Sequence record: MZ443783.1
Length of the DNA: 64,000 bases
Reading direction: 5' to 3' (one strand)
Position numbers and translations under genes: made by a program. The notes under the pieces were generated by a model, which saw only the letters and a program-made list of their open reading frames with translations, was not told the DNA's origin and made no database searches. Below are positions 24,724 to 60,184 of the stretch, piece after piece. Numbering within the stretch: the first letter of the stretch is position 1; the number at the start of each line of letters is the position of its first letter.

Positions 24724-24776
24724 ACACGTAGACGCTACATGTCGTAGCGCATACAACTACTGCCGAGGGGCACACA

Positions 24777-25151
24777 ATGACTGCTATCAAATTTGATTCT
24801 GTTTACGACATTCTTACCGAGATGGACGAATGCGCCAGAGATGTTGACTTCACCAAGACTCTTGGCTTCGACCCAATCAAAGTAGAAATTCTGCAATGCG
24901 GTCTGCAAGAAGATCTCGGCGTGTACGCGTGTTTGCCGAACGCCACAAACATTCTGATTGCCGATTCGACTGACCTGTTCTCTGAGCACCTTAAAGGTGA
25001 CGGCGAAATCACAGTCTGCCGAATCTTAACGCCTAACGGCGAGATGTTCGATGAGCCAGAAGTCGAAGTCAAACAGCTTGGCACGTTCAATGATTTTGAT
25101 TCAGCTTATGCTGCATGGTTAGCGGCGATTAACGAAGAAATCGACAAATAA
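24777..25151 (+). CDS. hypothetical acidic early protein (124 aa)
   Basis: GAGGGG RBS in a hairpin. Confidence 0.8.
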   Translation: MTAIKFDSVYDILTEMDECARDVDFTKTLGFDPIKVEILQCGLQEDLGVYACLPNATNILIADSTDLFSEHLKGDGEITVCRILTPNGEMFDEPEVEVKQLGTFNDFDSAYAAWLAAINEEIDK

Positions 25152-25196
25152 TAGGTCAAAAGCGCTGTAGCAATGCAGCGCTATTTATCGTACTAT
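25144..25196 (+). promoter_or_regulatory. early promoter cassette 2
   Basis: ACAAATAATAGGTCAAAAGCG, 26 nt, TACTAT. Confidence 0.7.
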
Positions 25197-25248
25197 GTAA
25201 TCTCTGGCGCAATGATGCGCACATACAACACTTGCCGAGGGGCACACA

Positions 25249-25950
25249 ATGAAAGCAGCAAACTTTGACGTAGCATTTAACGCGAAAGACGAAGCAACCT
25301 TAAACGCATACGCAGCGAAAATTCTCGAAGCGCTTAACGCTCTGGGGCGTTATGACCTGAAGATCAATATCATCTTCGGCACTGACCCGTTCGGCGAACG
25401 CCCTGATTTTGTGAATGACCCGAACGGTTTTCGCGTTACACAGAACGGCGAAGAAATTTTTGATATCTACACGCCGACAGAAAAACAGATTGAAGGCGAT
25501 GCGTCAGATGCTTTCATCTACGCTTCATGGGCCGACGGCGAAGCGCCGTGGGGTAAAGACGTGTCAGACAATGACATTGCAGAAATCGCCGAACACCTGA
25601 ACGCTGCAATCCCGCGTGTCGGCCGTGTATTCAACGAATCTGATCGTCAGATGCTGCAAAAACTCGCCGACACTTTGAACGCTCGTATGGATCGTACCGA
25701 TGCGCGAGTGATCGTAACGAACGGCGCCGAAGACGATCTCATTGTTATGGTTGTTGGTTACGACGAAGAAGAAGATGAAGTCAGTGATGAATACGGCTTC
25801 TTCTTGAGCCTGCCGTACACCGATGAAGGCGGCACAGACGAGAAATACAGTCTGCACTACGCTGGCTACCCAGGCGTGAACGACCACTCATATAGCTCTG
25901 CTGACCTCGACGAGATCTCAGAAGAAATCGAAGCGCTCGATCTGCTCTAA
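25249..25950 (+). CDS. hypothetical acidic early protein (233 aa)
   Basis: Leader nearly identical to that of 24777. Confidence 0.8.
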   Translation: MKAANFDVAFNAKDEATLNAYAAKILEALNALGRYDLKINIIFGTDPFGERPDFVNDPNGFRVTQNGEEIFDIYTPTEKQIEGDASDAFIYASWADGEAPWGKDVSDNDIAEIAEHLNAAIPRVGRVFNESDRQMLQKLADTLNARMDRTDARVIVTNGAEDDLIVMVVGYDEEEDEVSDEYGFFLSLPYTDEGGTDEKYSLHYAGYPGVNDHSYSSADLDEISEEIEALDLL

Positions 25951-25963
25951 TCACTAACTAACT

Positions 25964-25987
25964 GCGGGGTTACGGCCCCGCTTACTT
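25964..25987 (+). terminator. probable terminator
   Basis: GCGGGG-TTACGG-CCCCGC-TTACTT. Confidence 0.55.
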
Positions 25988-26012
25988 CACAATCTAATTG
26001 AGAGAACATGCC

Positions 26013-26627
26013 ATGAACCTTATCAATACTTTTTTCGTTAAACGCTCTTACGCTTCTCTGGCCGCAGGTAACTTTGCAATCGACGCCAAGCACGTACAAG
26101 AGCTGGTTGAATGTGAGTGTATGATCGTACACGTAGACACAGGCCACCGTAATGCGTTCGCGTTGAAGAACATCTCTATTACGCCTATCGACGAGCACAA
26201 CGTTCGCATTACGTTCGACCCGCTGACCGATGCACACGCGATGCCTGTGACTGTCATGCCGAAAGATCTGAAAGGCAGCATTGAAGTCTACGGCATGTAT
26301 GTAGAAGACCTGAAAGACGTGCCACGTTTCAGCGTGTCGAATGACGCATCAGGCAACAATCCAAATCTGCTGTCGCTTGACCTCGAAAGCCGTCAGCGTT
26401 TCGTTCAATACTTCGGTGGCATGTGTACGCTGACTGACCTGTGCCTGACTCTGCATGAGAAAGGCATTCACGTTGTCGATATCCACAACAACGTTAAGCA
26501 GCACGATCACGGCGTTGGCGTTTTCACTCAGCGCTATCGCACCGCATTCGAACTCAACAAAGACAATGGCATTAAGCGCCACAACGACGACTATCCTGTT
26601 TTGGCTCGCATGACCGTTTTAATGTAA
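26013..26627 (+). CDS. hypothetical protein
   Basis: In-frame ATG 26013 within ORF 25998-26627. Confidence 0.7.
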   Translation: MNLINTFFVKRSYASLAAGNFAIDAKHVQELVECECMIVHVDTGHRNAFALKNISITPIDEHNVRITFDPLTDAHAMPVTVMPKDLKGSIEVYGMYVEDLKDVPRFSVSNDASGNNPNLLSLDLESRQRFVQYFGGMCTLTDLCLTLHEKGIHVVDIHNNVKQHDHGVGVFTQRYRTAFELNKDNGIKRHNDDYPVLARMTVLM

Positions 26628-26636
26628 ACACACCTT

Positions 26637-26659
26637 GCCTCGCATACCGCGGGGCTTTT
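26637..26659 (+). terminator. intrinsic terminator
   Basis: GCCTCGC-ATACC-GCGGGGC-TTTT. Confidence 0.65.
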
Positions 26660-26675
26660 CTATTTGGAGAATGCT

Positions 26676-26936
26676 ATGCACCACTATACGCGTGAAGAAC
26701 TGGAAGAAATGAACTGCATCGAACTGGACCAGCTTGCAAACGAGCGCGGTCTGCTGGAAGATAAAGACGATGACGACGATCTGGACAATGACCTGCTCAT
26801 CGGCATGATTCTTGACGACCAGAACGATACTCGCGTTGCTGACGAGATGGAAGAAGATCGTCAGCAACATTATCGTCGCCTCGATGAAGAACAGCAGGCG
26901 CGTGAGGGCAAAGACGGTTCAGACGACTATTGCTGA
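26676..26936 (+). CDS. very acidic small protein with a Rho-N/HeH-like module (86 aa)
   Basis: ELEEMNCIELDQLANERGL...NDLLIGMILDDQ; GGAG RBS. Confidence 0.75.
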   Translation: MHHYTREELEEMNCIELDQLANERGLLEDKDDDDDLDNDLLIGMILDDQNDTRVADEMEEDRQQHYRRLDEEQQAREGKDGSDDYC

Positions 26937-26993
26937 TTAAGTAAACCAAGAGGCTGCCAGCGCTGGTGGCCTCACTCACAAGAAGGAGCAATA

Positions 26994-27341
26994 ATGAAGC
27001 GCAAAGTAATATTGATAGACACGGCAGAGTTTCACAACCAACCCATCTCGTTTCCATCGATCATTGATTTTGACGGCATAGACACGGTGGTGTTTGTTGT
27101 GAAGTCAAATGGTGAGCACGGAGGCATTGATTATCTTGGTGCGTACTGTGCAACACAAATGACAGTTGGCTATACGAAAGTGCCTATGGCGCAGACGTTG
27201 AATATCGACGAATATGGCGTTGTGCCACTCGAAGATGATATGAAGGCCAAGCTACTTCACACCAACCAGTACGTTGACGAAGTGCCTGAGCAACATCAAA
27301 GCATCTACAGCGCGAAGACTGAAATCCTCTTCGCAGAGTAA
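26994..27341 (+). CDS. hypothetical protein (115 aa)
   Basis: AGGAG RBS. Confidence 0.75.
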   Translation: MKRKVILIDTAEFHNQPISFPSIIDFDGIDTVVFVVKSNGEHGGIDYLGAYCATQMTVGYTKVPMAQTLNIDEYGVVPLEDDMKAKLLHTNQYVDEVPEQHQSIYSAKTEILFAE

Positions 27342-27345
27342 CCAC

Positions 27346-27374
27346 AAGGGCTGCCATTATTGGTGGCCCTTTTT
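27346..27374 (+). terminator. intrinsic terminator
   Basis: AAGGGCTGCCA-TTAT-TGGTGGCCCTT-TTT. Confidence 0.8.
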
Positions 27375-27376
27375 CA

Positions 27377-27387
27377 TTTCTGTAAAT
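27377..27387 (+). promoter_or_regulatory. TTTCTGTAAAT motif
   Basis: Directly after a terminator, about 32 nt before ATG 27419. Confidence 0.5.
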
Positions 27388-27418
27388 ACCTCGTACATTC
27401 ACTGATGCGAGAAACACA

Positions 27419-27790
27419 ATGCGCCGCTTTCTGACAGTCTTCAATGTCACTCAACAGGAGTTTGACGAACTACGCTTCTATCGCCACAAGCTCAACATCG
27501 TAACCACTTTGCGCCGCACTCACGGCATACTGCTGGTGGTACGTGAGACAGGCCGTGTGTTCAATGCCTCAACCGCCCTGTATCAACAAGCCGAAGAATA
27601 CGACTTGCGCCGCGTAGACTTCACTGGTCCTGTCGAAGTGACCAAAGAGTTAGGCGAACGCTTCTCTGAACTCAAGCAGGCAATCGCAAACAACCTGCAG
27701 GATAAAAGCATCAACTACTTTGGCCGCACTCTCTCGCTCGACGAAACTCAAGAGCGATTGTACGCCACTAAACTGGAGATACTCGTATGA
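27419..27790 (+). CDS. hypothetical protein (123 aa)
   Basis: ORF in operon. Confidence 0.7.
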   Translation: MRRFLTVFNVTQQEFDELRFYRHKLNIVTTLRRTHGILLVVRETGRVFNASTALYQQAEEYDLRRVDFTGPVEVTKELGERFSELKQAIANNLQDKSINYFGRTLSLDETQERLYATKLEILV

Positions 27791-28029
27791 CAACAATCGG
27801 TGCCTCGCTTGGTGCTCGCTTCGCTGCCACATCTTCGGAGCGTTGTTCTTCCCGCAAGAAAGCCAAGCCGCGCAACAAGACGCTGACTGCCGCAACAACT
27901 GCCGACATTCATAGCGCTGTCGAACGCCTGGCAATCAAGCTGGACACAACACGCTCGAACGTAATCGAGATCGCACTCAAAGAACTGTGCGCGAAACATG
28001 GCATAGCGATAGGCGATACCGATGAGTAA
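27787..28029 (+). CDS. ribbon-helix-helix (CopG/Arc-like) DNA-binding protein
   Basis: TLTAATTADIHSAVERLAIKLDTTRSNVIEIALKELC fits the RHH pattern; GGAG RBS. Confidence 0.65.
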   Translation: MTTIGASLGARFAATSSERCSSRKKAKPRNKTLTAATTADIHSAVERLAIKLDTTRSNVIEIALKELCAKHGIAIGDTDE

Positions 28030-28369
28030 CTTTATCTACTGTAGGCTGTACGGCGTTCAACATCGCCTGAATGTAGAGGGCATCGACTTCTCACAACAGA
28101 CCGTATCGTATATGGTGTCTGCCTCTGATATGCTGCGCATGATGCCGCGCATTCAGGTAGGTGCGGCCTATGACACGTACACGCCATACAATGTGCTCAA
28201 GGCAGGACGTGCTGACTTCAAGATCAAAAAGATTGAGAAGATAAGCGCTGACGAGTGGCGCTATTCGTTTGTTGATTATGCTGATACGCCGTTCAACACA
28301 ATTCTTAAACGGAGGTCGTATGTCGATAGGACTAGTGAAAGTAGTAGGCTTAAAAGACAAAGCACCTAA
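28022..28369 (+). CDS. hypothetical protein (115 aa)
   Basis: Overlap coupling. Confidence 0.7.
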   Translation: MSNFIYCRLYGVQHRLNVEGIDFSQQTVSYMVSASDMLRMMPRIQVGAAYDTYTPYNVLKAGRADFKIKKIEKISADEWRYSFVDYADTPFNTILKRRSYVDRTSESSRLKRQST

Positions 28370-28952
28370 GGGATTTGATTTAGATATCTGTCCTGTATCA
28401 CGCGACGACGATTGGTGGTCGCTGAGTCCATTCTATCTCGGGCCTTGTCGTACACCGAGCGGCATTATGTTCCACAACATGGAGAACATGTGGCAGTATA
28501 GCAAGGTGTACGAAGAACACCTAGTCAACTCGAATGATTTGTTTCATGGTGAAGTATCTGCCGAGTGGTGGGAATGGCATTTGAAAGGCAGTACAACCGA
28601 ACAGGCGCATCGCTATCCAGCGGGGAAGGGTCGAAAGGCCCTGTTCTCGAAATGGGGCGACTTGCGCCTTTCGTACATTCCCGCACGAAAACAAATCTAC
28701 GTGCCCGAATATGCGAAGCTGGTAATCCACAAGCCGAAGTTTAAACGCCTGCTTAAGGATTATAAGAAAGGTGCCAAGATAGTCCTCAGAGATTATGACA
28801 CCTACGATATTCAAAAGGCCTATCCAGATTCTCGTAGTCCGTGGCTGTCGGCCATTCAAAACGAGAACGCAAAATTCGGCCATGCGTTTGTCATTGCATT
28901 GGCCTTGATGTTCCACGAACGACCACTATGGTACAATCAATGGGTAATCTGA
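28320..28952 (+). CDS. conserved hypothetical protein, DUF6939-like (possibly NADAR-related)
   Basis: LSPFYLGP...ENMWQYSKVY...ARKQIYVPEY motifs; GGAGG RBS before ATG 28320. Confidence 0.6.
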   Translation: MSIGLVKVVGLKDKAPKGFDLDICPVSRDDDWWSLSPFYLGPCRTPSGIMFHNMENMWQYSKVYEEHLVNSNDLFHGEVSAEWWEWHLKGSTTEQAHRYPAGKGRKALFSKWGDLRLSYIPARKQIYVPEYAKLVIHKPKFKRLLKDYKKGAKIVLRDYDTYDIQKAYPDSRSPWLSAIQNENAKFGHAFVIALALMFHERPLWYNQWVI

Positions 28953-28996: not shown

Positions 28997-29260
28997 ATGA
29001 ATCTGCCGATTCTACCTCGCTGTGAACTACAAGCATTTGTTCTTGACGGACACACGCAAACTAAAGTGCCTATCAAACTTAATGCCACAAACGTCATCAA
29101 TGTGATGGGCAAAACGTGTGGTAGTCTGCAATGGTTTGATTGTGTGAATCTGCTCATATGGTCATCGTTTGAGCCAGGCAGGTTCACGCTGTATATTGAA
29201 CGTGCTTGCAAAACAGACGAGACTACAGACGACCAGCAATCTGCTGAACTCTGCAAATAA
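28997..29260 (+). CDS. hypothetical protein (87 aa)
   Basis: AAGGA RBS before ATG 28997. Confidence 0.6.
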   Translation: MNLPILPRCELQAFVLDGHTQTKVPIKLNATNVINVMGKTCGSLQWFDCVNLLIWSSFEPGRFTLYIERACKTDETTDDQQSAELCK

Positions 29261-29305
29261 TAGGCTGAAATAGCCATTCAGTCAGATACGCTCCTATGAT
29301 ATACT
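29253..29305 (+). promoter_or_regulatory. early promoter cassette 3
   Basis: GCAAATAATAGGCTGAAATAG, 26 nt, TG-A-TATACT. Confidence 0.85.
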
Positions 29306-29350
29306 ATACGTGAGCGCAGTGCTCATAAAACTAACGCTGAGGAGCGTATC

Positions 29351-29800
29351 ATGACTACTTTATCTATCGTTGATTTGAAGACCCCTGCGGAATTTACTAC
29401 CCACCTGACTTTCGGTCACATGGAAGAACTGCGAGCCAGCCTTGAGCGCGCCTTAAATCGTTCTGATCTCGAGGTGTATGTTGAATGCGATTCGAACTAC
29501 ACACTCGAAGAAGCAAACACCGACGGTCCTGACCAGCTGGTGGGCGATCATGAATGTATTAACGTTCACGTTCGTTATGCGGGAATGTCGTTCGATGAAG
29601 CGACGGCGAAAGGCGTGTGGGATATTTTACTGCAAACCCCGCACGAAGATAATAGCATGTCCGAGTGGTCTAACTCATACATCATGTATGTGGCAGATGA
29701 AAACCTCGACGCGCTGGAAGAAGTGACGATAGAAAACGGGAATCCTCGTATGATGGAAACTCTCGTTGATCGTATTAACTACTGGCTGCCAAAACTCTAA
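29351..29800 (+). CDS. hypothetical acidic protein (149 aa)
   Basis: GAGGAG RBS in a hairpin. Confidence 0.8.
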   Translation: MTTLSIVDLKTPAEFTTHLTFGHMEELRASLERALNRSDLEVYVECDSNYTLEEANTDGPDQLVGDHECINVHVRYAGMSFDEATAKGVWDILLQTPHEDNSMSEWSNSYIMYVADENLDALEEVTIENGNPRMMETLVDRINYWLPKL

Positions 29801-29841: not shown

Positions 29842-29866
29842 AACACCATAAGCTGAGGAGCTTAAC

Positions 29867-30225: not shown

Positions 30226-30249
30226 CAACCTGTTCTGAGGAGAACAACA

Positions 30250-30603: not shown

Positions 30604-30668
30604 TTGTTGCTCGCAGGTTCTTACGAGAGCCTGCTGTCAACATAACCCTATAAGCTGAGGAGCTTAAC

Positions 30669-31083: not shown

Positions 31084-31113
31084 GGGATGCTCATGAAGGT
31101 GGGCGTCCCATTT
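31084..31113 (+). terminator. probable terminator
   Basis: GGGATGCTCAT-GAAG-GTGGGCGTCCC-ATTT. Confidence 0.7.
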
Positions 31114-34691: not shown

Positions 34692-35093
34692 ATGGAAAAG
34701 ACGTACATGACACATTGGGGATCGCGCTACGTGCGGTCCTCCTCCGGCAAGTGGTATTCAGTTCATGGACGTGAAGGTACTTGGGTAACTAACCGCTACG
34801 GTACCTCATTCTATCGTAGCGGTTCAGAGGTATGGCGGGACATAACTCTTGCCGACCGAGAGTCATTAGAACGCGAATTACTCAAACGCACCCGCAATGA
34901 CTTCAAGGAAAATAAGCTCAAGTATAACCACTGGGGCAAAGTGGTGTTGACCATAGCTCGCCAGTCAGAAGATGAAAAGAATGAGCACACGGCAGAACTT
35001 GCTGTGATGCTTGAAGCGCTTAGACAGACTTTCTATGGACAGAAGGTACAGCAACTAAGCACAATTCTGGATGAAATAGCCGTTAAAGACTAA
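34692..35093 (+). CDS. hypothetical protein (133 aa)
   Basis: ORF in operon. Confidence 0.7.
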   Translation: MEKTYMTHWGSRYVRSSSGKWYSVHGREGTWVTNRYGTSFYRSGSEVWRDITLADRESLERELLKRTRNDFKENKLKYNHWGKVVLTIARQSEDEKNEHTAELAVMLEALRQTFYGQKVQQLSTILDEIAVKD

Positions 35094-35111
35094 GCTCGTT
35101 TGTGATATAAT
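35059..35111 (+). promoter_or_regulatory. early promoter cassette 4
   Basis: GCACAATTCTGGATGAAATAG, 26 nt, TG-A-TATAAT; found by predicting its position from the -10. Confidence 0.8.
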
Positions 35112-35154
35112 AGAGATCAACGCTAGACACTCGTTTAGCTACTTACATGAGGAT

Positions 35155-35496
35155 ATGTATATGAAAAAGTCAAAAGTTAAAGCAGAAGTTGTTGCACCTA
35201 CTATCGAAGGTCGTTCATTCACGTTATATAACGCCTCGCCTGTTCCCGAATTGTCCGTAACACCGTTTGCAGGCCGTGATGCGTTTTTACCTCTACTGCG
35301 TAAAGTTCAGGATGCTGCTCAACTGGAGCGTATTCGTGGTATGTCCTGTTGTCCGTACTGCCGTGAAACAATGATGTTAGGCGAGTACACCAAAGACAAC
35401 TGGCTGTGGTCATATTCATATCAGCACATGATCGAACACCACAACGTAACGCCGTCCGCAGAATTTATTGCATACGTCGAAGCCGCTTCTAAATAA
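35155..35496 (+). CDS. hypothetical protein with CPYC and YQHMIEHH motifs
   Basis: GAGGA RBS. Confidence 0.75.
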   Translation: MYMKKSKVKAEVVAPTIEGRSFTLYNASPVPELSVTPFAGRDAFLPLLRKVQDAAQLERIRGMSCCPYCRETMMLGEYTKDNWLWSYSYQHMIEHHNVTPSAEFIAYVEAASK

Positions 35497-42465: not shown

Positions 42466-42491
42466 AGGGAGGTCCTTAGCGGGATCTCCCT
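42466..42491 (+). terminator. stem-loop, probable terminator
   Basis: AGGGAGGTCC-loop-GGATCTCCCT. Confidence 0.6.
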
Positions 42492-42514
42492 ATGTCATTT
42501 CTGGAGCATTTCTC

Positions 42515-43495
42515 ATGCGTTTTGGTTTCGCCTGCAAATTGCTTGACGCAAACAACAAACAACCATTCACGAATAAGAGCCTTAGCTATAAACATTTCTC
42601 TGCGCTGTCTGCTACTGACCAACATGCAAAACTTCTGGACGTTGTTACGCACAACCTGACTTCGTTGCTCAACATGATTAAACACGTTGGCCGACTGCGT
42701 ACAGACCTACGTATGTTTCGAATCACCAGTGAGTTGCTTCCACTCTACACTCACCCTAAAGTGTTTCACATGTACATGCGCCATGACGTTGTTACTCTTA
42801 CTGAGTCGCTACTCGCCTTGTGTGGTGAAGCGGCTCGACGCCATGACGTGCGATTATCATTTCACCCAGGTCAGTTCACGGTACTCGCATCTGACCGACC
42901 TGATGTTGTCCAGAACTCAATAGCCGAACTTGAGTACCATGCGTACTGTGCATATCACATGGGATATGGTCGCCGCTTCCAAGACTTCAAAATCAATATT
43001 CACCTTAGCGGTAGACTTGGTGCTTCTGGTTTCAGACAAGCGCATTCGAAACTTTCTGATCGCTGCCGAAACATGTTGACCGTAGAGAACGACGAAATCA
43101 CTTCCAGCCTCGAAGATGTTTTGTGTCTGGCAGACATATGCCCGATTGTCCTCGACATTCATCATCACTGGGTAATGACCAACGAATACATACAACCGAC
43201 CGACGATCGTGTTCAGCGTGTCATTGATTCTTGGCGCGGCGTAAGACCAGTAGCGCATTACTCTGTGTCGAAGCCTGAGTTCGTACCGTCGCGCGGACTC
43301 CCTGATCAGAACAAGCTGTCCGCTAATCGAATGCAGTTACGTGCTCATGCTGATTACTACCACAACGAAGACGTAAACGAGTGGGCCACTAGTTTCACTG
43401 ATTTTGACCTTATGTGTGAGTCAAAAGCGAAAAATAGGGCTAGACTGAAACTGGCGTGTTTTAGCGTCAACTCTGCAAATAATTGGACAAAATGA
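42515..43495 (+). CDS. uvsE: UV damage endonuclease UvsE/UvdE
   Basis: MRFGFAC, HNL, FRITSELLP, RLSFHPGQF.VL.S, INIH, LTVENDE, LDIHHH, H.S, AHAD, MCESKAK. Confidence 0.93.
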   Translation: MRFGFACKLLDANNKQPFTNKSLSYKHFSALSATDQHAKLLDVVTHNLTSLLNMIKHVGRLRTDLRMFRITSELLPLYTHPKVFHMYMRHDVVTLTESLLALCGEAARRHDVRLSFHPGQFTVLASDRPDVVQNSIAELEYHAYCAYHMGYGRRFQDFKINIHLSGRLGASGFRQAHSKLSDRCRNMLTVENDEITSSLEDVLCLADICPIVLDIHHHWVMTNEYIQPTDDRVQRVIDSWRGVRPVAHYSVSKPEFVPSRGLPDQNKLSANRMQLRAHADYYHNEDVNEWATSFTDFDLMCESKAKNRARLKLACFSVNSANNWTK

Positions 43496-43528
43496 GGCTT
43501 GTTTACGAAGGTAGCCCTGTGATACACT
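43475..43528 (+). promoter_or_regulatory. early promoter cassette 5
   Basis: GCAAATAATTGGACAAAATGA, 27 nt, TG-A-TACACT. Confidence 0.8.
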
Positions 43529-43580
43529 AGATATGAGCGTTATCGCTCGTATAACTAGACTGACACAAGGAAATAAGACA

Positions 43581-43883
43581 ATGTTCAATACTACTACCAT
43601 CGTAAAGAAATCTGGTGCTGCAAACGCTACCAATCATTCGTTCGGTATTACAGGTATCACGCCAACCAATCGCATCTCCTGCATCTGGCCTGGCGCTCTG
43701 GAAGTTCCGGCTGACATTAAACGTTGGTGCCGTGCTAACGAAATCATGAATGACCTTGACGCTTACATGCGTGTTCGTTTTAAAGGTCGTCGTGCTGATA
43801 TCCTGAACTTGGTTGCTCGTCATCTGGCGCCAAACAATCCTGAACTGGCTGTGCGTATTCTTGCAACTATCACTGAGGCCTAA
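43581..43883 (+). CDS. hypothetical protein
   Basis: AAGGA RBS before ATG 43581. Confidence 0.75.
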   Translation: MFNTTTIVKKSGAANATNHSFGITGITPTNRISCIWPGALEVPADIKRWCRANEIMNDLDAYMRVRFKGRRADILNLVARHLAPNNPELAVRILATITEA

Positions 43884-45715: not shown

Positions 45716-46905
45716 CCGAAGCTGAAATGAACATCGACCACATTCGCAACGCCACGAAATCTATCTTCACTTCTGGCACCGTTCAGCAACGTGACGCTCT
45801 GCGTTCAATCGCTAACACTGTACTTGCACCTAACGCCATGTTTGCGTGTGAAGTCGAGGCGCCTGATGTGGAAACCGCGTATCGTCTGCTGGAAGAAATC
45901 AAATTCACTGGTGACGGCACTAACATGCTTCCTGCCGATGAAGTGTATGCGCTCGATTCCATTCTGAGTAAGAAGTGGAAGAAAGACTTCTTTGAAGCAG
46001 TGCGTAATATCGCGCTGACAATGTACTGCACCGACCCGGCTACTTCGGGTAAAGGCTTTTGGCCACGCAATCAAGGCGAGTTCAATCAGTTGATCACTCG
46101 CGCTTTCGTCTGGGTGTTGGCTCAAGAAGGTCTGAAAAACGTATTGAAAGATCCGACTGTCGTTAGCCATACACGTCTGGCTCAATTTATGATCGCAACG
46201 CAACTCGTAGGCAAAGACGAACCTAATCTGCGCCACTTCACAACGTACCGTCCGTATCAGGACACTGGTGGTGTGAACTGCGACAACATTCTGCCTGAGT
46301 CTTATCTCGAACAAATTCGCGCAGAACGCCGTGCAGGCCAGCCGCCAGAATATGAAGCTGCCAAGAACATGTCGTTCTCTGACCTGGCTGATTTGTGTGA
46401 GCGCTTGAACGTCATTGGTCCGGGTTCGACTAAACCCGTAACCTGTAATTGTGCTGTCGGTGAGCTTTGCGGATGCGAAGAAGACGAATACCAGACGCGT
46501 GATGATTTTGACGAAGACCAGGAGGAGTTGCTGGAAGAGTTCTATCGTAAATTCGGCTTCCCTCACGATGAAGATGAAGACGAGCCCGAAGAAGAAATCT
46601 GGCGTGAAGGTATCTCGCTCATGGAAGTTGAGGTCGACCTGCCTACTGTGCGTCTGACTCTTCCAGAAGCCGGTGTCCGCAAAGACTCACGCATGAAAAA
46701 GCCGATGCAGAAATCTCGCCGTAACAAGATTCTGCTTACGGCTGAACAACAAATCTGGCACAAGGTTGACACTGACCCTGTGTCCGCAGATCGTCGCTTC
46801 GCTATCAGCCTCGTATCTCGTCATACGTGCGGTGTTAGTCGCCCTGTAGCCACGCAGCGTGAAGCACTGGCAATTGCTGCCGCTCTCGCTGAACTCTGCA
46901 AGTAA
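45712..46905 (+). CDS. hypothetical protein (397 aa) with a Cys cluster and an acidic stretch
   Basis: GAGGAAGGA RBS; CNCAVGELCGC. Confidence 0.8.
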   Translation: MTEAEMNIDHIRNATKSIFTSGTVQQRDALRSIANTVLAPNAMFACEVEAPDVETAYRLLEEIKFTGDGTNMLPADEVYALDSILSKKWKKDFFEAVRNIALTMYCTDPATSGKGFWPRNQGEFNQLITRAFVWVLAQEGLKNVLKDPTVVSHTRLAQFMIATQLVGKDEPNLRHFTTYRPYQDTGGVNCDNILPESYLEQIRAERRAGQPPEYEAAKNMSFSDLADLCERLNVIGPGSTKPVTCNCAVGELCGCEEDEYQTRDDFDEDQEELLEEFYRKFGFPHDEDEDEPEEEIWREGISLMEVEVDLPTVRLTLPEAGVRKDSRMKKPMQKSRRNKILLTAEQQIWHKVDTDPVSADRRFAISLVSRHTCGVSRPVATQREALAIAAALAELCK

Positions 46906-46950
46906 CTGGTCAGAATAGCGCTTCTTCGTGGGGCGCTTCTATGATATAAT
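46898..46950 (+). promoter_or_regulatory. early promoter cassette 6
   Basis: GCAAGTAACTGGTCAGAATAG, 26 nt, TG-A-TATAAT. Confidence 0.85.
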
Positions 46951-47016
46951 CATAGATAGAGCAATATCGCTCTCAACGTTTTATCAACCATACGTTTAAA
47001 CACGGGATTGTCATTT

Positions 47017-51118: not shown

Positions 51119-51149
51119 AACGGGAGACCTTAACTGGTTTCCCGTTTTT
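51119..51149 (+). terminator. intrinsic terminator
   Basis: AACGGGAGACC-TTAACT-GGTTTCCCGTT-TTT. Confidence 0.85.
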
Positions 51150-51182
51150 CATTTCTGCGCAAATTTTCTAAGGACTACCACA

Positions 51183-52124
51183 ATGACTAAAATGATCAAC
51201 ATGCCGTTCGCCACATCTTCAATTCGTAGCTCTTTCTTCTCTGCGAAAGTTCGTGAACTCGATCTCCAGAACGTCTGGAGTCACGTTGTATCAAACAACA
51301 ATCCACAATGGCACGGCGACCCGTTGCTGCACCACATGCACTATCATTCTACCGAGCACATGAAGCAAGTAACTGCTCTCGCTCTGTGGCTGCTGAACGA
51401 AGAAGCTGAACAGCCGTGGCAGTATGACTTGGGTGCGCTGCCGCTGGCTGTCGCGTGTATGTTCCACGATATGCACCATTCTCTCGGCCGCTTGAGCGAT
51501 GCAGTCAACGTGCGTAATGCACAAGACGCTTTCAAACAATATGTGGCTGTATGTGAAGACCAACGCATTATCGACCAGCAGGAAATCATTCTCGAACTGA
51601 TAGGCGTTACGGAATTCCCGTACATGAAGAACCGCCAGCCGAAGAATCTGGTTGAGCGTTGCATTCGTGATGCGGATATTCTTTACGGTATGCAGGACGA
51701 TGCGCTGGACGTTGTGATGTTCGCACTACGTCGTGAGGTGAATCGTGCTGTGAACAAGCCAACACACTTCACGTCAGAACAATGGGCGGCAGGTCGTGTT
51801 GACTTCCTCATGTCTGTGGAGATGTATACGCCTACAGCAAACGCGATCATGGACTGGCTGTTGGCACAAGACAACGATCACAATCATCAGTCTAAGATTG
51901 ATAGCTGGATGCGGGACAACGTTATCTTCCGCGATACGTCAGCACACAAGCTCCAGGCCAATGACGTGTTGTTCATCGACACTGAGGCAGATAGTGCGCC
52001 GAAGCGCCGTTTGATCGAGCGTGTTGAGTCAGTACATCCGTACATCAACTTCTACTTCCATGACGGTGAAGCTATCTCGCTGCGTGACGGCGAGAGCTGT
52101 GTCGTTTGCGAAAGACGCAAATAA
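51183..52124 (+). CDS. HD-domain metal-dependent phosphohydrolase
   Basis: YHSTEH, ACMFHDMHH, CIRDADIL. Confidence 0.85.
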   Translation: MTKMINMPFATSSIRSSFFSAKVRELDLQNVWSHVVSNNNPQWHGDPLLHHMHYHSTEHMKQVTALALWLLNEEAEQPWQYDLGALPLAVACMFHDMHHSLGRLSDAVNVRNAQDAFKQYVAVCEDQRIIDQQEIILELIGVTEFPYMKNRQPKNLVERCIRDADILYGMQDDALDVVMFALRREVNRAVNKPTHFTSEQWAAGRVDFLMSVEMYTPTANAIMDWLLAQDNDHNHQSKIDSWMRDNVIFRDTSAHKLQANDVLFIDTEADSAPKRRLIERVESVHPYINFYFHDGEAISLRDGESCVVCERRK

Positions 52125-52168
52125 TAGGCTGAAATAGACGTATACGAACCACGTGCCTATGATATACT
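52117..52168 (+). promoter_or_regulatory. early promoter cassette 7
   Basis: GCAAATAATAGGCTGAAATAG (identical to cassette 3), 25 nt, TG-A-TATACT. Confidence 0.85.
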
Positions 52169-52200: not shown

Positions 52201-52905
52201 ATGAAATACTTGAAGCGCATTCATCCAGGTGTGGACGCAAGTCTGTTTGCAATTAACGGAATCGTAATACCGATGGCTTTCTTCTACATGGACGTCACTG
52301 TCCATGATCAGGAGCGCGGTGACAAAGAAATAAAGCTCGGTGTGCGTATGAATCCACACGTTCCTGTAGAATCCTATCTGCCTGGCGTGGACTACAGAAC
52401 GTATATTCCAGTGTTGGCCTGCGACCCATCTGATGACGAAGGGTTCCATACGGAGCTGGGGTTCATTGACATTAACAGTCGCTATGTTGATCTGCATCAC
52501 CAGAAGCGAACGTATCTTGCTTATCTAGGTTCGTTGCCTGATGTTGCGGAGTCCGATGTGCGCGACAAACGATATGTATGTCCGATAGACATACGCCAAA
52601 TACCGCCACATCCTGACATGCCTCAACGTTTCCGCAACACACCACGTTACGGCGCAACGATTCGCACTGATTACCTGCGTACCTCTGCCATCGATCAGAT
52701 CGACGATGAAACGTGGGAAGCGCTGCGCACCATCGACCACGCTAAAGGTACTACGTGGTCACAGTTTTTAGACGCCGCAACGTCAGGGCGCTTCACGCCA
52801 CACGATGATCTGTCAGACTGTTTGGAGAACATCGACCACGAGTACATGCCTGAGCATATCTTCAAGCGTATTCGTATTGCTCAATTCGAGAAAAGAAGGA
52901 ACTGA
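52201..52905 (+). CDS. hypothetical protein (234 aa)
   Basis: Follows a promoter; GAGAG RBS-like. Confidence 0.75.
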   Translation: MKYLKRIHPGVDASLFAINGIVIPMAFFYMDVTVHDQERGDKEIKLGVRMNPHVPVESYLPGVDYRTYIPVLACDPSDDEGFHTELGFIDINSRYVDLHHQKRTYLAYLGSLPDVAESDVRDKRYVCPIDIRQIPPHPDMPQRFRNTPRYGATIRTDYLRTSAIDQIDDETWEALRTIDHAKGTTWSQFLDAATSGRFTPHDDLSDCLENIDHEYMPEHIFKRIRIAQFEKRRN

Positions 52906-55954: not shown

Positions 55955-55962
55955 GGTGACCT

Positions 55963-56262
55963 ATGCCACGCGAACAAATTCTGATGAATGACGTTGCTAT
56001 CGTCCTGACCATGAGCGAACGTCGTGCGTTCTTGGGACCTAAAGCTGATGGCTTCGTGTACTTGCCGTCGAAAGAAGCTCTCACGAAGTTTGAGGCTCAT
56101 ATCAAACGTTATGGTAGTCGTGATGAGTATGCGTTCATTGAACACCGCGAACTGCACTCTTTGAACTCTGCTGGGATTGTGGCTATCGCTCACGCTGTCG
56201 AATCTGACTCCGAGCGCCCGTGGTTGTGGACGAAAGAAGACTTCCGCGTTAAGCTCTGGTAA
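55963..56262 (+). CDS. hypothetical protein (99 aa)
   Basis: GAGGTG RBS. Confidence 0.75.
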   Translation: MPREQILMNDVAIVLTMSERRAFLGPKADGFVYLPSKEALTKFEAHIKRYGSRDEYAFIEHRELHSLNSAGIVAIAHAVESDSERPWLWTKEDFRVKLW

Positions 56263-56315
56263 GCATAAAACTGGCTAAAATCGTGGTATCAATTTAAGCC
56301 CGACTGTGATATACT
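56263..56315 (+). promoter_or_regulatory. early promoter cassette 8
   Basis: GCATAAAACTGGCTAAAATCG, 26 nt, TG-A-TATACT. Confidence 0.85.
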
Positions 56316-56365
56316 AAAAGCGTAGCGATGCTGCGCTTTTTCACTTATGTCTGAGGAGACAACAA

Positions 56366-56830
56366 ATGATTGAAGAAATCAAACCCACCATGTCGGATAT
56401 TGAATTGCAGGACCAGATGATCGATGCGGCTGCCCAGAAGCTGATTGAACTGAAACCTGAATGGGTGGACGTTTGTGCGGCTGCACTTCGTTTATATCTG
56501 ACCGTGTGTGAAGAAATTGGCGGTCCTATTCCAGAACTGCGGTTCGTCCACAACTCCAAGCCGTGCCGTCTTCAATTCAATTTGAAAGAGTCGGTGGAAG
56601 GTGCCGAGTTCGTGGCGAACGAAATCGACAAAGACAAGCAGATGGCTATTGTCGATGAAATGTTGAAAACTGCCGAAGCGTGTCCGAACGGCCACTCGAT
56701 GTTGGACTTCGCTATTTGCTCTGGACGCCTGTTCATGATTGGTTATGATGGCCTTGCTGGTACGCTCGATAAGATTTGCTTCTGTGCCAACAAGAAAAAC
56801 TATTCCATGACTCTGGTTAAAGGTGAATAA
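56366..56830 (+). CDS. hypothetical protein (154 aa)
   Basis: GAGGAG RBS in a hairpin. Confidence 0.8.
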   Translation: MIEEIKPTMSDIELQDQMIDAAAQKLIELKPEWVDVCAAALRLYLTVCEEIGGPIPELRFVHNSKPCRLQFNLKESVEGAEFVANEIDKDKQMAIVDEMLKTAEACPNGHSMLDFAICSGRLFMIGYDGLAGTLDKICFCANKKNYSMTLVKGE

Positions 56831-56831
56831 C

Positions 56832-57515
56832 ATGAAACCTGACTACACTCTGCTTAAACGTAGTAAGACGCACGAAGATGTTTTCGCTTTCGTGTTTGAC
56901 GGCGAGTTGCTTGTTCAATTCAAAGCTGTCCAGTTGCATAAAGCTCTGACCGAAACGCTCAAAGCAAACTGCATCAATGAAGTCGATATCCTGTGGCGTG
57001 ACGGTACGCGTACGGTCCAACAACTGGTTGTGCATCATACGCGTGAGTTCGTACAGTTCGACACTATCGTCCACAACTACAGCGTGTGCCTGATGCTTCG
57101 CGCACAAGGCGTTGGTCATTCGCTTGCTGTGCCTGTCGATGTTCGTTCTATGTATGATGCCGACGGCCTGATGATCAGTGAGATTCGCATTGATAGTGAA
57201 ACAGTCGCTGATCTGATGCGTCACATTAAAACCACGCCATACATTGATCCAGAAGAAGATGACGATGTTGGCGATATGGACGAAGATGATGATTGGGATG
57301 ACGATGATCTCGATCCGACCGAGTTCCACGATATCGAAACAGAATCTATTGCCGATAACAAATTGCAGATTGGCGACTGGGGATATCGCGCCCACGACTG
57401 GGCGATCACTCTGACCGACGAACAGGTAGACCGCATTCACTTCCTCGAAGTCGGCATTGACCCTGACATTGAACTGCCTATTGCAGATGATGCTAAGAAG
57501 GACGCATTCTTCTAA
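56832..57515 (+). CDS. hypothetical protein with an acidic C-terminal half
   Basis: AGGTG RBS before ATG 56832. Confidence 0.78.
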   Translation: MKPDYTLLKRSKTHEDVFAFVFDGELLVQFKAVQLHKALTETLKANCINEVDILWRDGTRTVQQLVVHHTREFVQFDTIVHNYSVCLMLRAQGVGHSLAVPVDVRSMYDADGLMISEIRIDSETVADLMRHIKTTPYIDPEEDDDVGDMDEDDDWDDDDLDPTEFHDIETESIADNKLQIGDWGYRAHDWAITLTDEQVDRIHFLEVGIDPDIELPIADDAKKDAFF

Positions 57516-57706
57516 TGAAAACGATCAACGAACAAGTCAACGAATTGAAACAGCGCGGCGTGCTTATCATCGAAGAACACCAGAAGCATACGCTGCCAGA
57601 TTTGACCTTCACGCTCGACTGTATGTGTCTGCCTCATACGAAGCGTGAAGTAGAGACAACCACGCGCGGCCGCGTTGTTAAAATTCGCCTGACAAACATT
57701 CACTAA
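57515..57706 (+). CDS. hypothetical protein (63 aa)
   Basis: TAATG coupling. Confidence 0.65.
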   Translation: MKTINEQVNELKQRGVLIIEEHQKHTLPDLTFTLDCMCLPHTKREVETTTRGRVVKIRLTNIH

Positions 57707-57719
57707 CTTTTGTGGTCTT

Positions 57720-57794
57720 GGCCCGCCCGTCCAGAAATGCTCACCCCCAATGAGGTGTCTCGCGCAGGGGCATGACGGTCACCGGGTCCTTTTT
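57720..57794 (+). ncRNA. candidate structured RNA or long terminator
   Basis: Nested stems 57720-25/57783-88, 57727-31/57774-78 and 57737-42/57768-73, then TTTTT. Confidence 0.35.
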
Positions 57795-57850
57795 AGAGCG
57801 CACTACAGAGTACGCTGTACAAAGTAAACAACAAAACAGGAGGCTGTTAT

Positions 57851-58195
57851 ATGCGTTTCACCGAAGTATCAAAAGACGCACAGGTTGCGTTAATGTCTAG
57901 CGCACTTGCGGGAGTAATTGAGGCATTCACCCGCGAAGAAGATGATGAAGGCCGCAAGATTCTAGTTCTGGCCCTCAAGCAAGTCGGTCTGACGGTAGAT
58001 GAGTTCAGCGCACTTATCTCTGACTTGTCGCCAGAAGTTGAGCTTGAGATCGTTCGCGTTATGGAAGCTGCTGATGCCGAAGCGGATGAAGAAGACGCAG
58101 ACAGCGAACTCGACACGATGGAAGAGCGCCCAGGCAACCTGAACGATGCGCCGAACATTAATGCAGACGGCTGGGAGAATCTCAAAGATGAGTAG
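57851..58195 (+). CDS. hypothetical acidic protein (114 aa)
   Basis: AGGAGG RBS. Confidence 0.8.
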   Translation: MRFTEVSKDAQVALMSSALAGVIEAFTREEDDEGRKILVLALKQVGLTVDEFSALISDLSPEVELEIVRVMEAADAEADEEDADSELDTMEERPGNLNDAPNINADGWENLKDE

Positions 58196-58391
58196 TCAAG
58201 ATGATGTGAATGGTAGAATTGCTGCGGCCGACGAGCAACGTCAGAAAGAGCGTGAATCACGCTATGATGATTGGTCGATTGACGACCTGCGTGATGCTCT
58301 GCTTGAGAATGGTCTTGTATTTGACGGTGAAGACGTAGACGACTACAGCCGCGCAGACTGTATCAGACTGCTACTGGCTGATGGCTTCTAA
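58188..58391 (+). CDS. small acidic protein with a HeH-like module (67 aa)
   Basis: YDDWSIDDLRDALLENGL...SRADCIRLLL; GGGAG RBS. Confidence 0.7.
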   Translation: MSSQDDVNGRIAAADEQRQKERESRYDDWSIDDLRDALLENGLVFDGEDVDDYSRADCIRLLLADGF

Positions 58392-58444
58392 GCACAAAAC
58401 TGGACAAAATCGTGGTTGTCTCAAATAGCTGCCTGAACTATACT
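58392..58444 (+). promoter_or_regulatory. early promoter cassette 9
   Basis: GCACAAAACTGGACAAAATCG, 26 nt, TATACT. Confidence 0.85.
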
Positions 58445-58450
58445 ATATAG

Positions 58451-58648
58451 ACAGCGAGACAACTATCTCTCTGTATGCCTTTGTTATTGCTTGACCGTGT
58501 GTTTTTCGATTTTCCCGGACGCACGGTCCTTTTTAAAGTGGACTTCGCTGAGGTTCCTTTAAAAAGGGTTCGATACCCTTTGAGCGCGTCGGGCTTTACG
58601 CGGTTTCCGCCTTACGTGCTCTCATGCTAAACCGCAAAGGAAATTGAA
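58451..58648 (+). promoter_or_regulatory. ~200-nt structured 5' leader or attenuator candidate
   Basis: Several hairpins, one followed by T5; alternative pairing near the SD. Confidence 0.4.
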
Positions 58649-59407
58649 ATGCCTACTACTTCACGTCCTAAGACAGAAGACAAGTTTTCCCGTGCTCGCG
58701 CCGCCAAAAACTCACCTGAGCGTCAGGCCGCGGCCACCAAGAAAACGCCACGAGGTCCTTCCTCGGTTCGTCCTAAATCAACGGCAGATCGTGAGCCTAA
58801 GATTCGTGACGAGGAGCGTGTGTACAATCTCGTACATGCAATTCTGAGCGCGTGGAAAGCTGATGTGGGTCATGCCGAACACACGGCAGCCTCTGCTGGT
58901 ATCATCAAAGTGTCTCGCCGTAAGATTGAAGGTGCCTTGCGTGACCTCAAGAATACGCGCTTCACTAAGATCCCGACGCTCATTAATGACGTCCTCGTGT
59001 ATAACGAAGTCTGCAATGAGTTCGGGCAGTGGGTATATGTCGAGCATGACAGTCCTGATTGGATTTTCGTGCGCTTGCCTGAAAACAGCACACCTGTGAT
59101 TCGTGCTGATATCAGCTACGACAAGACAGGCAAAACGTCTGCGTCTGTTTCGACTTCCAGCGAAGTGTTGCTGGAGGACTTTGACGAAGACGAAGAAGAT
59201 GAAATCCCTGAGAACGTCGAATATGACGACGAGGATGATTCTGATGTGAACGAAGAAGAGGACGACGAGGAGGAGTACCAGTCCTGGTCCCTCAGCCAAC
59301 TTCAAAACTTTGCTAAGGCCGAAGGTTACATCTGCATCAAAGATGAAGGTTGGAACGACCGCCAGACGCTTCTTGCTCGCATCCTGAATAAGGGAGCAAT
59401 CAAATGA
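58649..59407 (+). CDS. hypothetical protein (252 aa): basic N-terminus, acidic linker, C-terminal HeH-like module
   Basis: AAGGA RBS, TTG start. Confidence 0.78.
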   Translation: MPTTSRPKTEDKFSRARAAKNSPERQAAATKKTPRGPSSVRPKSTADREPKIRDEERVYNLVHAILSAWKADVGHAEHTAASAGIIKVSRRKIEGALRDLKNTRFTKIPTLINDVLVYNEVCNEFGQWVYVEHDSPDWIFVRLPENSTPVIRADISYDKTGKTSASVSTSSEVLLEDFDEDEEDEIPENVEYDDEDDSDVNEEEDDEEEYQSWSLSQLQNFAKAEGYICIKDEGWNDRQTLLARILNKGAIK

Positions 59408-59853
59408 GTCTGACTATTCGCTCTGCTGCCGAAACTGCTGCAATGATCATTGAAAACGTCACTCTCTACTCTCAAGAGAAGGGGCACGAATATCCGCTGC
59501 CGCGCTTTAAGATGCCCGACAATGCGATACGTCGAATCTCTGGTCATGCTCGCGTTCTGCCTGAAAGCTATATTGAGCAACTGTCTATCGAGCTGCAACA
59601 AATCGACTGGATGATGCTGCGGTATAACGCCGGCGAGTTCTTGTTCATGCACTACGATATCCCAAAGAACTGGACGCGACTGAGTGCGAAGCGTGTGGTC
59701 CCTAATGACGACCCTGCCGCTGAGTACGATACGTGGACGCTTCCTGAACTTCAGGGCTTCGCTCAACGTAACGACTTTTTGCAGCCTGACGAAGAGGGCT
59801 TCAACGATAGAGCGTCACTGATTCGCGCTATCATGCTAGGCGAGACCCATTGA
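59404..59853 (+). CDS. hypothetical protein (149 aa) with a C-terminal HeH-like module
   Basis: C-terminal ~40 aa clearly similar to that of 58649-59407. Confidence 0.8.
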   Translation: MSLTIRSAAETAAMIIENVTLYSQEKGHEYPLPRFKMPDNAIRRISGHARVLPESYIEQLSIELQQIDWMMLRYNAGEFLFMHYDIPKNWTRLSAKRVVPNDDPAAEYDTWTLPELQGFAQRNDFLQPDEEGFNDRASLIRAIMLGETH

Positions 59854-59872
59854 GTAGGGGGAAGATAATCGA

Positions 59873-60019
59873 ATGAACAAATCTAAGCGGGACGCAGAAG
59901 ACCCCGACATTGCTAAAATGCGCAAGCGTCTGGTAGATGCGAAAATCATCAAGCCAGAAGCTGCTGTGAAGCTGTCAAGCAATGACATTGTGAAGCTGTA
60001 CACTTACTACAGCGTATAA
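59873..60019 (+). CDS. small protein (48 aa)
   Basis: MNKSKRDAEDPDIAKMRKRLVDAKIIKPEAAVKLSSNDIVKLYTYYSV; GGGGGA upstream; below the track cutoff. Confidence 0.6.
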   Translation: MNKSKRDAEDPDIAKMRKRLVDAKIIKPEAAVKLSSNDIVKLYTYYSV

Positions 60020-60067
60020 GCAATAATGAGCAGGCAGTGAACGTGCTGCCTGCTATCTGCGAAGTAT

Positions 60068-60121
60068 GCAGAAAACTGGACAAAATCGTGGTTGTTATCT
60101 GAAAGCAACCTATGCTATACT
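60068..60121 (+). promoter_or_regulatory. early promoter cassette 10
   Basis: GCAGAAAACTGGACAAAATCG, 27 nt, TG-C-TATACT. Confidence 0.85.
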
Positions 60122-60184
60122 TAATGCAGACGCAATATCGCGTCGGCAAGCAAATCAAACAACAAATACTGAGGAGTATTAATC

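Follow-up and report, generated by a model that had tools for sequence, protein, structure and literature searches.

A repeated early-type promoter cassette with a short hairpin at its predicted transcript start in Erwinia phage pEa_SNUABM_28 and related jumbo phages

The window analysed here is a stretch of 64,000 nucleotides from the 267,143 bp genome of Erwinia phage pEa_SNUABM_28 (MZ443783.1), an Alexandravirus jumbo phage of the fire-blight bacterium. All positions are window positions unless marked as record positions; a record position minus 186,000 gives the window position. From 24.7 to 60.2 kb the window holds a series of small + strand genes, every one of them annotated as hypothetical, and a few genes of this region bear names in the RefSeq records of relatives. 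Pfam confirmed a Tpt1/KptA protein, UvdE, a radical-SAM protein, a DksA/TraR-type zinc finger and an SLT transglycosylase among the encoded proteins. A position-weight scan of the 267-kb genome placed exactly ten copies of a promoter cassette in the window, all on the + strand. No function could be assigned to the ten genes directly after the cassettes: eight have no Pfam or PHROGs family, and the other two match only weak families or families of unknown function. Each cassette begins with an upstream box, followed by a free spacer, an extended -10 element, a short G+C-rich hairpin and an A-rich, G-poor linker, and in about half of the copies by a second hairpin that carries the Shine-Dalgarno sequence GAGG. 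The hairpin that follows the -10, hereafter the 5' hairpin, is the main subject of this study. The features are as follows.

24666-24691 (box) and 24713-24723 (extended -10), + strand: cassette 1 promoter, from the registered cassette alignment and the position-weight-matrix scan.
24733-24749, + strand: cassette 1 5' hairpin, 6-bp stem and 5-nt loop, at about +4 from the predicted start 24730; kept in the relatives AD1, SNUABM_33 and SNUABM_17 with variable loops.
24761-24772, + strand: cassette 1 Shine-Dalgarno hairpin, TGCC-GAGG-GGCA, ATG at 24777; TGCT-AAGG-AGCA in relatives.
25139-25164 (box), 25162-25181 (terminator-like spacer hairpin) and 25191-25201 (-10 region), + strand: cassette 2 promoter, with an ambiguous choice of hexamer.
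25207-25220, + strand: cassette 2 5' hairpin, GCGCA/TGCGC; relatives pair a shifted AGCGC/GCGCT.
25233-25244, + strand: cassette 2 Shine-Dalgarno hairpin, ATG at 25249.
29248-29273 (box) and 29295-29305 (-10), + strand: cassette 3 promoter.
29311-29325, + strand: cassette 3 5' hairpin, core GAGC/GCTC from the predicted +1 (29312).
29334-29347, + strand: cassette 3 Shine-Dalgarno hairpin, ACGCT-GAGG-AGCGT, ATG at 29351; a C-G pair is changed to A-U in 4 of 9 distinct sequences.
35054-35079 (box) and 35101-35111 (-10), + strand: cassette 4 promoter.
35122-35139, + strand: cassette 4 5' hairpin, 7 bp with one G-T pair, starting at about +5.
43470-43495 (box) and 43518-43528 (-10), + strand: cassette 5 promoter.
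43531-43552, + strand: cassette 5 5' hairpin with one G-T pair, core GAGCG/CGCTC from the predicted +1 (43535); likely true ATG at 43581.
46893-46918 (box), 46917-46937 (spacer hairpin) and 46940-46950 (-10), + strand: cassette 6 promoter.
46958-46973, + strand: cassette 6 5' hairpin, AGAGC-loop-GCTCT.
52112-52137 (box) and 52158-52168 (-10), + strand: cassette 7 promoter, without a 5' hairpin; predicted leader of 26 nt, ATG at 52201.
56258-56283 (box) and 56305-56315 (-10), + strand: cassette 8 promoter.
56316-56345 (stem-loop 56316-56340), + strand: cassette 8 hairpin and T-run, 11 bp with one G-T pair, terminator-like; predicted start 56322 within the 5' arm.
56348-56361, + strand: cassette 8 Shine-Dalgarno hairpin, TGTCT-GAGG-AGACA, ATG at 56366.
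58387-58412 (box) and 58434-58444 (-10), + strand: cassette 9 promoter.
58451-58474, + strand: cassette 9 first hairpin, an interrupted stem from the predicted +1.
58493-58528, T-run to 58534, + strand: cassette 9 second hairpin, intrinsic-terminator-like, inside the 198-nt leader 58451-58648 that is free of open reading frames (ORFs).
60063-60088 (box), 60087-60114 (spacer hairpin) and 60111-60121 (-10), + strand: cassette 10 promoter.
60129-60144, + strand: cassette 10 5' hairpin, GACGC-loop-GCGTC from the predicted +2.
60165-60180, + strand: cassette 10 Shine-Dalgarno hairpin, AATACT-GAGG-AGTATT, ATG at 60185.
29849-29864, 30231-30246 and 30651-30666, + strand: Shine-Dalgarno hairpins with a GAGG tetraloop at internal genes without a promoter cassette.

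Aligned on the -10, the ten sites can be followed over about 60 nt without gaps. The upstream box has the consensus aaCTCTGCAaATAAyTGGnCaAAATaG and ends 23-24 nt (28 nt in cassette 2) before an 11-mer, TRTGATAYAMT, which represents an extended -10 (TGnTAYAMT) of the kind that needs no -35; the copies in cassettes 2 and 9 deviate from it. When the -10 is set at -12 to -7, the box covers the interval from about -64 to -39 and contains A-tracts around -57 and -44, with a constant distance of 42-44 nt to the -10. By these positions it looks like an UP element, and it has conserved G/C positions (CTGCA...TGG) in addition. No conserved -35 element was found across the cassettes, the spacer between box and -10 being free. 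A simple -35/-10 promoter scan showed no excess of canonical promoters and did not single out the cassettes, which it missed because they have no -35. In cassettes 2, 6 and 10 the usual place of the -35 is occupied by spacer hairpins (25162-25181, 46917-46937 and 60087-60114) of -8 to -14 kcal/mol, and that of cassette 2 was also picked up by a terminator scan.

The box often overlaps the end of the upstream coding sequence, its final codons and its stop, in differing frames: it is read as ELCK plus stop at cassettes 3 and 6 and as NSANNWTK plus stop at cassette 5, and it lies outside a gene at cassette 1. Several unrelated proteins have ELCK ends owing to this overlap. A conserved ELCK peptide as the explanation of the box is ruled out by the different frames and the extragenic position at cassette 1; the box is therefore a nucleic-acid signal. 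Phage T4 has strong early promoters of the sigma-70 type, in which an extended -10 and A-tracts around -42 and -52 are frequent. The cassettes resemble them in the apparent use of host polymerase, in the near-consensus -10 with TG upstream and in the A/T-rich elements at UP-element positions. They differ in that T4 promoters have a -35, whereas the phage box contains conserved G/C positions that a plain UP element does not require and often overlaps the last codons of the upstream gene. The near-consensus extended -10 points to host sigma-70, and together with the surrounding genes without assigned function it suggests that expression is probably early. The phage group relies on host RNA polymerase and encodes sigma-like factors only (PMC7412058; PMC13282480). 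A gene for a DksA/TraR-like protein is present in the cassette region.

The same cassettes are found in relatives. The comparison covered the corresponding 50-kb region of eight further species of Alexandravirus and of SNUABM_7 (Snuvirus), Y3 (Sasquatchvirus), Yoloswag and Dickeya phage JA29 (Salmondvirus). This region holds 10-11 cassettes in every Alexandravirus, in SNUABM_7 and in Y3, 9 in Yoloswag and 3 in JA29; all are on the + strand, with a spacing of likewise 42-44 nt, and mostly they stand ahead of the same genes. Apart from these phages and chance matches, a pattern scan of IMG/VR returned only two metagenomic relatives (~265 kb) that carry the same cassettes and one candidate for a more distant relative. 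The ten sites are best read as copies of a single early-type promoter cassette that Alexandravirus shares with related jumbo phages. Outside the window, an 11th cassette lies on the + strand at record position 258599 (258540-258670), with the hairpin AGACA-AGTAG-TGTCT, ahead of the gene for the topoisomerase II large subunit. A looser 12th copy at record position 262680 (262620-262730), also on the + strand, is followed by an 11-bp hairpin inside the 340-nt gap before gene 342.

The initial annotation had noted a stem-loop shortly after nine of the ten -10 boxes, and all nine were recovered in place, that of cassette 9 (58451-74) as an interrupted stem; cassette 7, which had been described as lacking one, has no hairpin here or in any relative. 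In 32-nt windows beginning 5 nt after the -10, the mean folding energy is -8.2 kcal/mol versus -4.2 kcal/mol (sd 2.8) for random windows of the same genome (P < 5e-5; in none of 20,000 draws did ten random windows have a mean as low as this). Strict hairpins, for which we required 5 or more perfectly paired bp, 3-8 nt in the loop, an energy of -5.5 kcal/mol or better and a start at most 12 nt from the -10, occur in 8 of the 10 cassettes (the interrupted stem of cassette 9 is not counted); such hairpins are present at 5% of positions drawn at random (P = 2e-9) and in 18% of the windows from 21 cassette-free intergenic gaps (P = 3e-5). The excess of structure after the -10 is present in each phage taken alone (AD1, P = 0.002; SNUABM_7, 0.006; Y3, 0.003; Yoloswag, 0.02; JA29, 0.005). 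For a non-redundant set of 39 cassettes from pEa_SNUABM_28, SNUABM_7, Y3, Yoloswag and JA29, the strongest perfect hairpin of the first 60 nt begins 3-11 nt after the -10 in 22, with about 5.8 expected (p = 3e-9); in the remainder of this set the strongest hairpin is mostly the Shine-Dalgarno hairpin.

We infer that transcription starts 7 nt after the -10, which is the usual spacing. Relative to this predicted start, the stem begins at a distance of 0-1 nt in cassettes 2, 3, 5, 6, 8, 9 and 10 and of 3-4 nt in cassettes 1 and 4. Folding of the predicted transcripts gave high pairing from +1 to +5, a dip from +7 to +9 and again high pairing from +11 to +16, with random controls being flat. Among the nine 5' hairpins a T-run directly after the stem is found in cassette 8 only. 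The other eight continue into A/C-rich sequence, and a reading of these eight as intrinsic terminators is ruled out since they are without a T-run. The leader after the hairpin has 39% A and 19% G versus 27% A and 25% G in the window. Neither the window nor the leader of cassette 9 gave a match in searches for tRNAs and Rfam families.

The stems differ from cassette to cassette, so structure matters rather than sequence. This is also visible among orthologous cassettes. In cassette 10 the stem is GACGC/GCGTC in most phages, GGTGC/GCACC in SNUABM_2, CGAGCA/TGCTCG in SNUABM_7 and GCGC/GCGC in Y3, with the loops AATATC, AATAGT, ACAAC and AGTGA. For cassette 4, 100% of the cells are paired, two pairs being changed on both sides in Alexandra; the covariation score was reached by 6 of 500 shuffles, and controls slid along the sequence had 14-54% of cells paired. 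Cassette 3 has a both-sides change in one pair of its 5' hairpin and in one pair of its Shine-Dalgarno hairpin. The stem AGAGC/GCTCT of cassette 6 is unchanged in 11 genomes that carry eight variants of the loop. Yoloswag and JA29 have hairpins at the same place that are unrelated in sequence, for example GCAGC-GCAA-GCTGC and GGGCA-GCAA-TGCCC. The AATATC loop which the initial annotation saw in both cassette 6 and cassette 10 is real in pEa_SNUABM_28, with loops varying freely in the orthologous cassettes of other phages. Altogether, the case that the hairpins are under selection as structures, with a function that would depend on pairing and not on sequence, is good but not overwhelming.

In cassettes 1, 2, 3, 8 and 10 a second hairpin presents GAGG as a tetraloop 7-10 nt before the ATG. 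To the promoter and its 5' hairpin the initial annotation had added this structure as the third part of a repeated module, and the analysis supports such a repeated module. We scanned the + strand of the record from 208 to 267 kb for GAGG located 5-11 nt before an ATG that opens an ORF (n = 27). At 11 of the 27 sites GAGG is enclosed by an inverted repeat of at least 4 bp, compared to ~0.5 expected (P = 2e-12), and at nine by one of at least 5 bp. The stems of 4-6 bp differ between genes while the loop is constant. Six of the 11 hairpins are located at internal genes without a promoter cassette; examples of the tetraloop hairpins besides those listed above are 57835-57848 and 61858-61871. The Shine-Dalgarno hairpin is hence a feature of its own that goes with genes and does not belong to the promoter repeat. 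T4 RegB cleaves GGAG if GGA is unpaired and the last G is constrained (PMC3014915). The structured Shine-Dalgarno sites of T4-type phages that are connected with RegB (PMC3014915) are similar in that the GGAG of early-gene ribosome-binding sites lies inside a small structure; a GAGG tetraloop on a 4-6 bp stem is a distinct and regular motif. No RegB homologue was found here, though no search was aimed at one.

We propose that the first hairpin is a 5'-terminal stem-loop that stabilizes the mRNA, and our confidence in this is about even because the start sites are only predicted. In this role the hairpin would shield the transcript's triphosphate end against RppH and against RNase E entry that depends on the 5' end, and early phage messages would thereby outlive host messages. 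The Erwinia host has both RppH and RNase E. The leader of phage T7 gene 10 is a phage example of such a 5'-terminal stabilizer. The phasing of the stems close to +1 is what a 5'-terminal protective stem-loop requires. In an experimental precedent, a hairpin added to the 5' end of the bla mRNA stabilized the message and impeded RppH (PMC3997798). The phage hairpins share with this construct and with the ompA and papA leaders a short hairpin at or few nucleotides from the 5' end (a predicted end in our case), a putative action through structure and not sequence, and a following unstructured leader with a strong ribosome-binding site. They differ from these stabilizers in that they recur at about ten promoters within a single phage region and are kept in five genera, in having shorter stems (4-7 bp) and in being known from sequence alone.

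Several observations weigh against this proposal. A protective role would fall away if transcription began inside the stems or at a distance of over ~5 nt upstream, and already the predicted start cuts off outer stem pairs at cassettes 3, 5 and 8. Cassette 7 is free of a hairpin in every lineage, the hairpin of cassette 5 is lost in SNUABM_17, and several cassettes of Yoloswag and SNUABM_7 have none. The stems are short (4-7 bp) with energies of -5 to -8 kcal/mol. The covariation counts are small, and since the sequences are related they do not count as independent. In read-through transcripts from upstream the hairpins would be internal, where they give no protection of the 5' end. A different function is probable for the cassette 8 hairpin and for the second one of cassette 9, both of which resemble intrinsic terminators.

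In cassette 8 the 11-bp stem is followed by a T-run in all copies from Alexandravirus, SNUABM_7 and Y3. It sits directly after the -10, so that the predicted start falls within the 5' arm. It looks like a hairpin that may terminate transcripts arriving from upstream, which transcripts from its own promoter would partly escape. The cassette 9 transcript begins with 198 nt free of ORFs (58451-58648), in which the interrupted hairpin is followed by an 18-nt single-stranded stretch and by the second hairpin with its T-run. In this second hairpin, 7 of 11 pairs have changes on both sides among nine phages. Downstream of it the leader contains a T-tract/A-tract pairing and then a GGGTTCGATACCC hairpin. 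The leader thus has the layout of a putative small RNA of ~85 nt or of a transcription attenuator. The segment 58491-58735, which belongs to this non-coding leader, is among the few places covered in both of two wastewater metatranscriptomes; these contain short contigs of relatives (85-92% identity) that include no 5' ends and may include DNA. A search of sequencing runs for RNA from infection by the phage found none; a phyllosphere metagenome contains related DNA. Elsewhere in the region, three strong intrinsic terminators with 11-bp stems (27346-27381, 42466-42502 and 51119-51156) are each followed by T(T/G)TCATTTCT just before the next gene, and a similar string comes after the stem of a fourth strong terminator at 31084. 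The string T(T/G)TCATTTCT might represent another type of signal or simply a longer T-run.

The initial annotation compared the cassettes with the promoter-early-stem-loop (PeSL) elements of T4-type phages and expected gene gain and loss to break at them. PeSLs consist of sigma-70-like promoters with -35 and -10 and a stem-loop between these or over the -10, which is an effective terminator, and exchanges between PeSL copies account for insertions, deletions and mini-circles (PMC2839356). [quoted passage not shown] The differences are that the cassettes lack a -35, that their conserved hairpin lies downstream of the -10 and inside the transcript, that only one cassette hairpin is terminator-like, that no stem is of the poly-G/poly-C kind and that the phage lineage is unrelated. 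The cassettes fail two defining features of PeSLs, the promoter with a -35 and the place and terminator role of the stem-loop, and are not PeSL members. What stands of the analogy is the repeated module of promoter, stem-loop and ribosome-binding site; with the main hairpin downstream of the -10, a T-run in cassette 8 only and no enrichment of breakpoints, it is weak.

For the breakpoint test, ORFs of 11 genomes were clustered into families and each gene adjacency of the reference was scored for breakage. Nine of the 10 cassette junctions were broken in at least one genome, versus 50 of the 72 other junctions, with means of 3.6 and 3.0 genomes (Fisher p = 0.27, Mann-Whitney p = 0.25). The predicted enrichment at cassette junctions was therefore not found, and a general shuffling of the PeSL type is unsupported by the adjacency test (p = 0.25). 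Clear mosaicism between cassettes is restricted to cassettes 1 and 2 (24666-25250). An "a" type of promoter and hairpin stands before gene 256 here and before the homologue of gene 257 in AD1, SNUABM_33 and SNUABM_17; a "b" type stands before gene 257 here and before a different gene in Alexandra, AD1, SNUABM_2, SNUABM_33 and SNUABM_3. The same promoter-and-hairpin type precedes three different downstream genes, and the hairpin of Alexandra is chimeric and still pairs. The junctions of the mosaic are found just after the hairpin or in a common leader segment of ~35 nt. Directly after cassettes 3 and 4 there are insertions whose bounds are repeated translation-start sequences and not cassettes. 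Due to the mosaic of cassettes 1 and 2 and the missing overall enrichment of breakpoints, we conclude that cassettes can recombine but that gene turnover appears to take place mainly elsewhere. Compared with SNUABM_35, Alexandra, AD1, SNUABM_2 and SNUABM_17, the window has an inserted gene 278 (35161-35496), which is bounded by a repeated translation-start sequence of ~21 nt (GAGGAnATGnAnATGAAAAAG); members of its small gene family are found to either side of the radical-SAM gene in different phages. Genes 335 and 336 (record 255923-257433) have internal DNA repeats in common that cross-match between phages, and the slot of gene 336 is taken by a different gene family in almost every phage.

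Other explanations of the 5' hairpins have to be weighed against a role in protecting the 5' end. The hairpins could act on transcripts that come from upstream, by termination or as protective 3' hairpins after processing, and would then insulate the promoter units from each other as in T4-type PeSLs; transcripts from the own promoter start at or inside the stem and would so escape. The 11-bp G+C-rich stem of cassette 8 with its T-run and with the predicted start within the 5' arm argues for this, as do the strong spacer hairpins of cassettes 2, 6 and 10 at the PeSL position (PMC2839356), and upstream of most cassettes there is no separate terminator. However, the T-run is missing after all hairpins but one of the nine, ordinary strong terminators are in use at other places of the phage genome (27346, 31084, 42466 and 51119), and the tight phasing to the -10 is superfluous for a role at a 3' end, so that we regard this explanation as unlikely. 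A more speculative reading is that the cassettes define a new promoter class of at least five genera of jumbo phages dependent on host polymerase, in which the box at about -50 might be read by a new factor, brought in with the phage or provided by the host, transcription would start exactly at the base of the hairpin, and the hairpin would both end or cap upstream transcripts and protect the 5' ends of its own. We offer this tentatively and consider it doubtful.

Less probable still is the idea that the cassettes are mainly recombination modules, where exchange between copies shuffles, deletes or excises the intervening genes and the hairpin is just part of the repeat. It draws on the mosaic of cassettes 1 and 2 with one promoter-and-hairpin type before three genes, on the chimeric hairpin of Alexandra, on gene 256, which forms with one cassette an indel relative to AD1 that is delimited by the common ~35-nt leader segment, and on the genes adjoining cassettes 3, 4, 7, 9 and 10, which differ between phages. 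But broken adjacencies are not more common at cassette junctions, gene gain and loss occur mostly at cassette-free junctions, the insertions after cassettes 3 and 4 arose via repeated translation-start sequences and not whole cassettes, and the cassettes have just ~35 conserved bases in common, spread across ~60; this makes a main role in recombination improbable. We also think it quite improbable that the first hairpin is a folding insulator for translation, which would lock the first 15-20 nt away from pairing with the Shine-Dalgarno region and let linker and Shine-Dalgarno hairpin fold independently of context. The order of hairpin, A-rich and G-poor linker and Shine-Dalgarno hairpin would suit such a role, as would the enrichment of the tetraloop hairpins at 11 of 27 GAGG sites, but these are found too at internal genes without a 5' hairpin, and cassettes 4, 5, 6 and 9 have a 5' hairpin and no hairpin with a GAGG loop. 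A role as folding insulator is moreover compatible with one as stabilizer. A function as protein site, be it for an antiterminator of the lambda nut or HK022 put type, for a translational repressor or for a repressor on the DNA palindrome, appears highly improbable. It is true that the hairpins lie directly after the promoter, as nut and put sites do, and that about eight hairpins across lineages have a GC-AAT-NNN-GC core in common. However, stems and loops differ widely among cassettes and loops drift between orthologues. No hairpin sequence or boxA is common to all cassettes, no boxA-like motif and no match to an Rfam family was found, and a single protein site is rejected on account of the AATATC loop of cassettes 6 and 10, which is not kept in orthologues.

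In conclusion, the cassettes provide a map of about a dozen likely early transcription units in a region of genes without assigned function, and they suggest a design rule of upstream box, extended -10, hairpin at +1, A-rich leader and looped Shine-Dalgarno sequence. Text searches of the available papers found no description of a promoter or RNA signal for the fire-blight and soft-rot jumbo phages, and the group appears to be without an earlier one. No current view is overturned by our proposal; protection by a 5' hairpin is a known trick, of which this would be a new example. Should the cassettes constitute a new promoter class, their combination with the Shine-Dalgarno tetraloop hairpins would amount to a self-contained unit for the expression of newly acquired genes. 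If the 5' hairpins are stabilizers as we propose, they would represent a family-wide case of phages guarding their first transcripts against the decay machinery of the host, and the cassettes would be natural parts for phage engineering.

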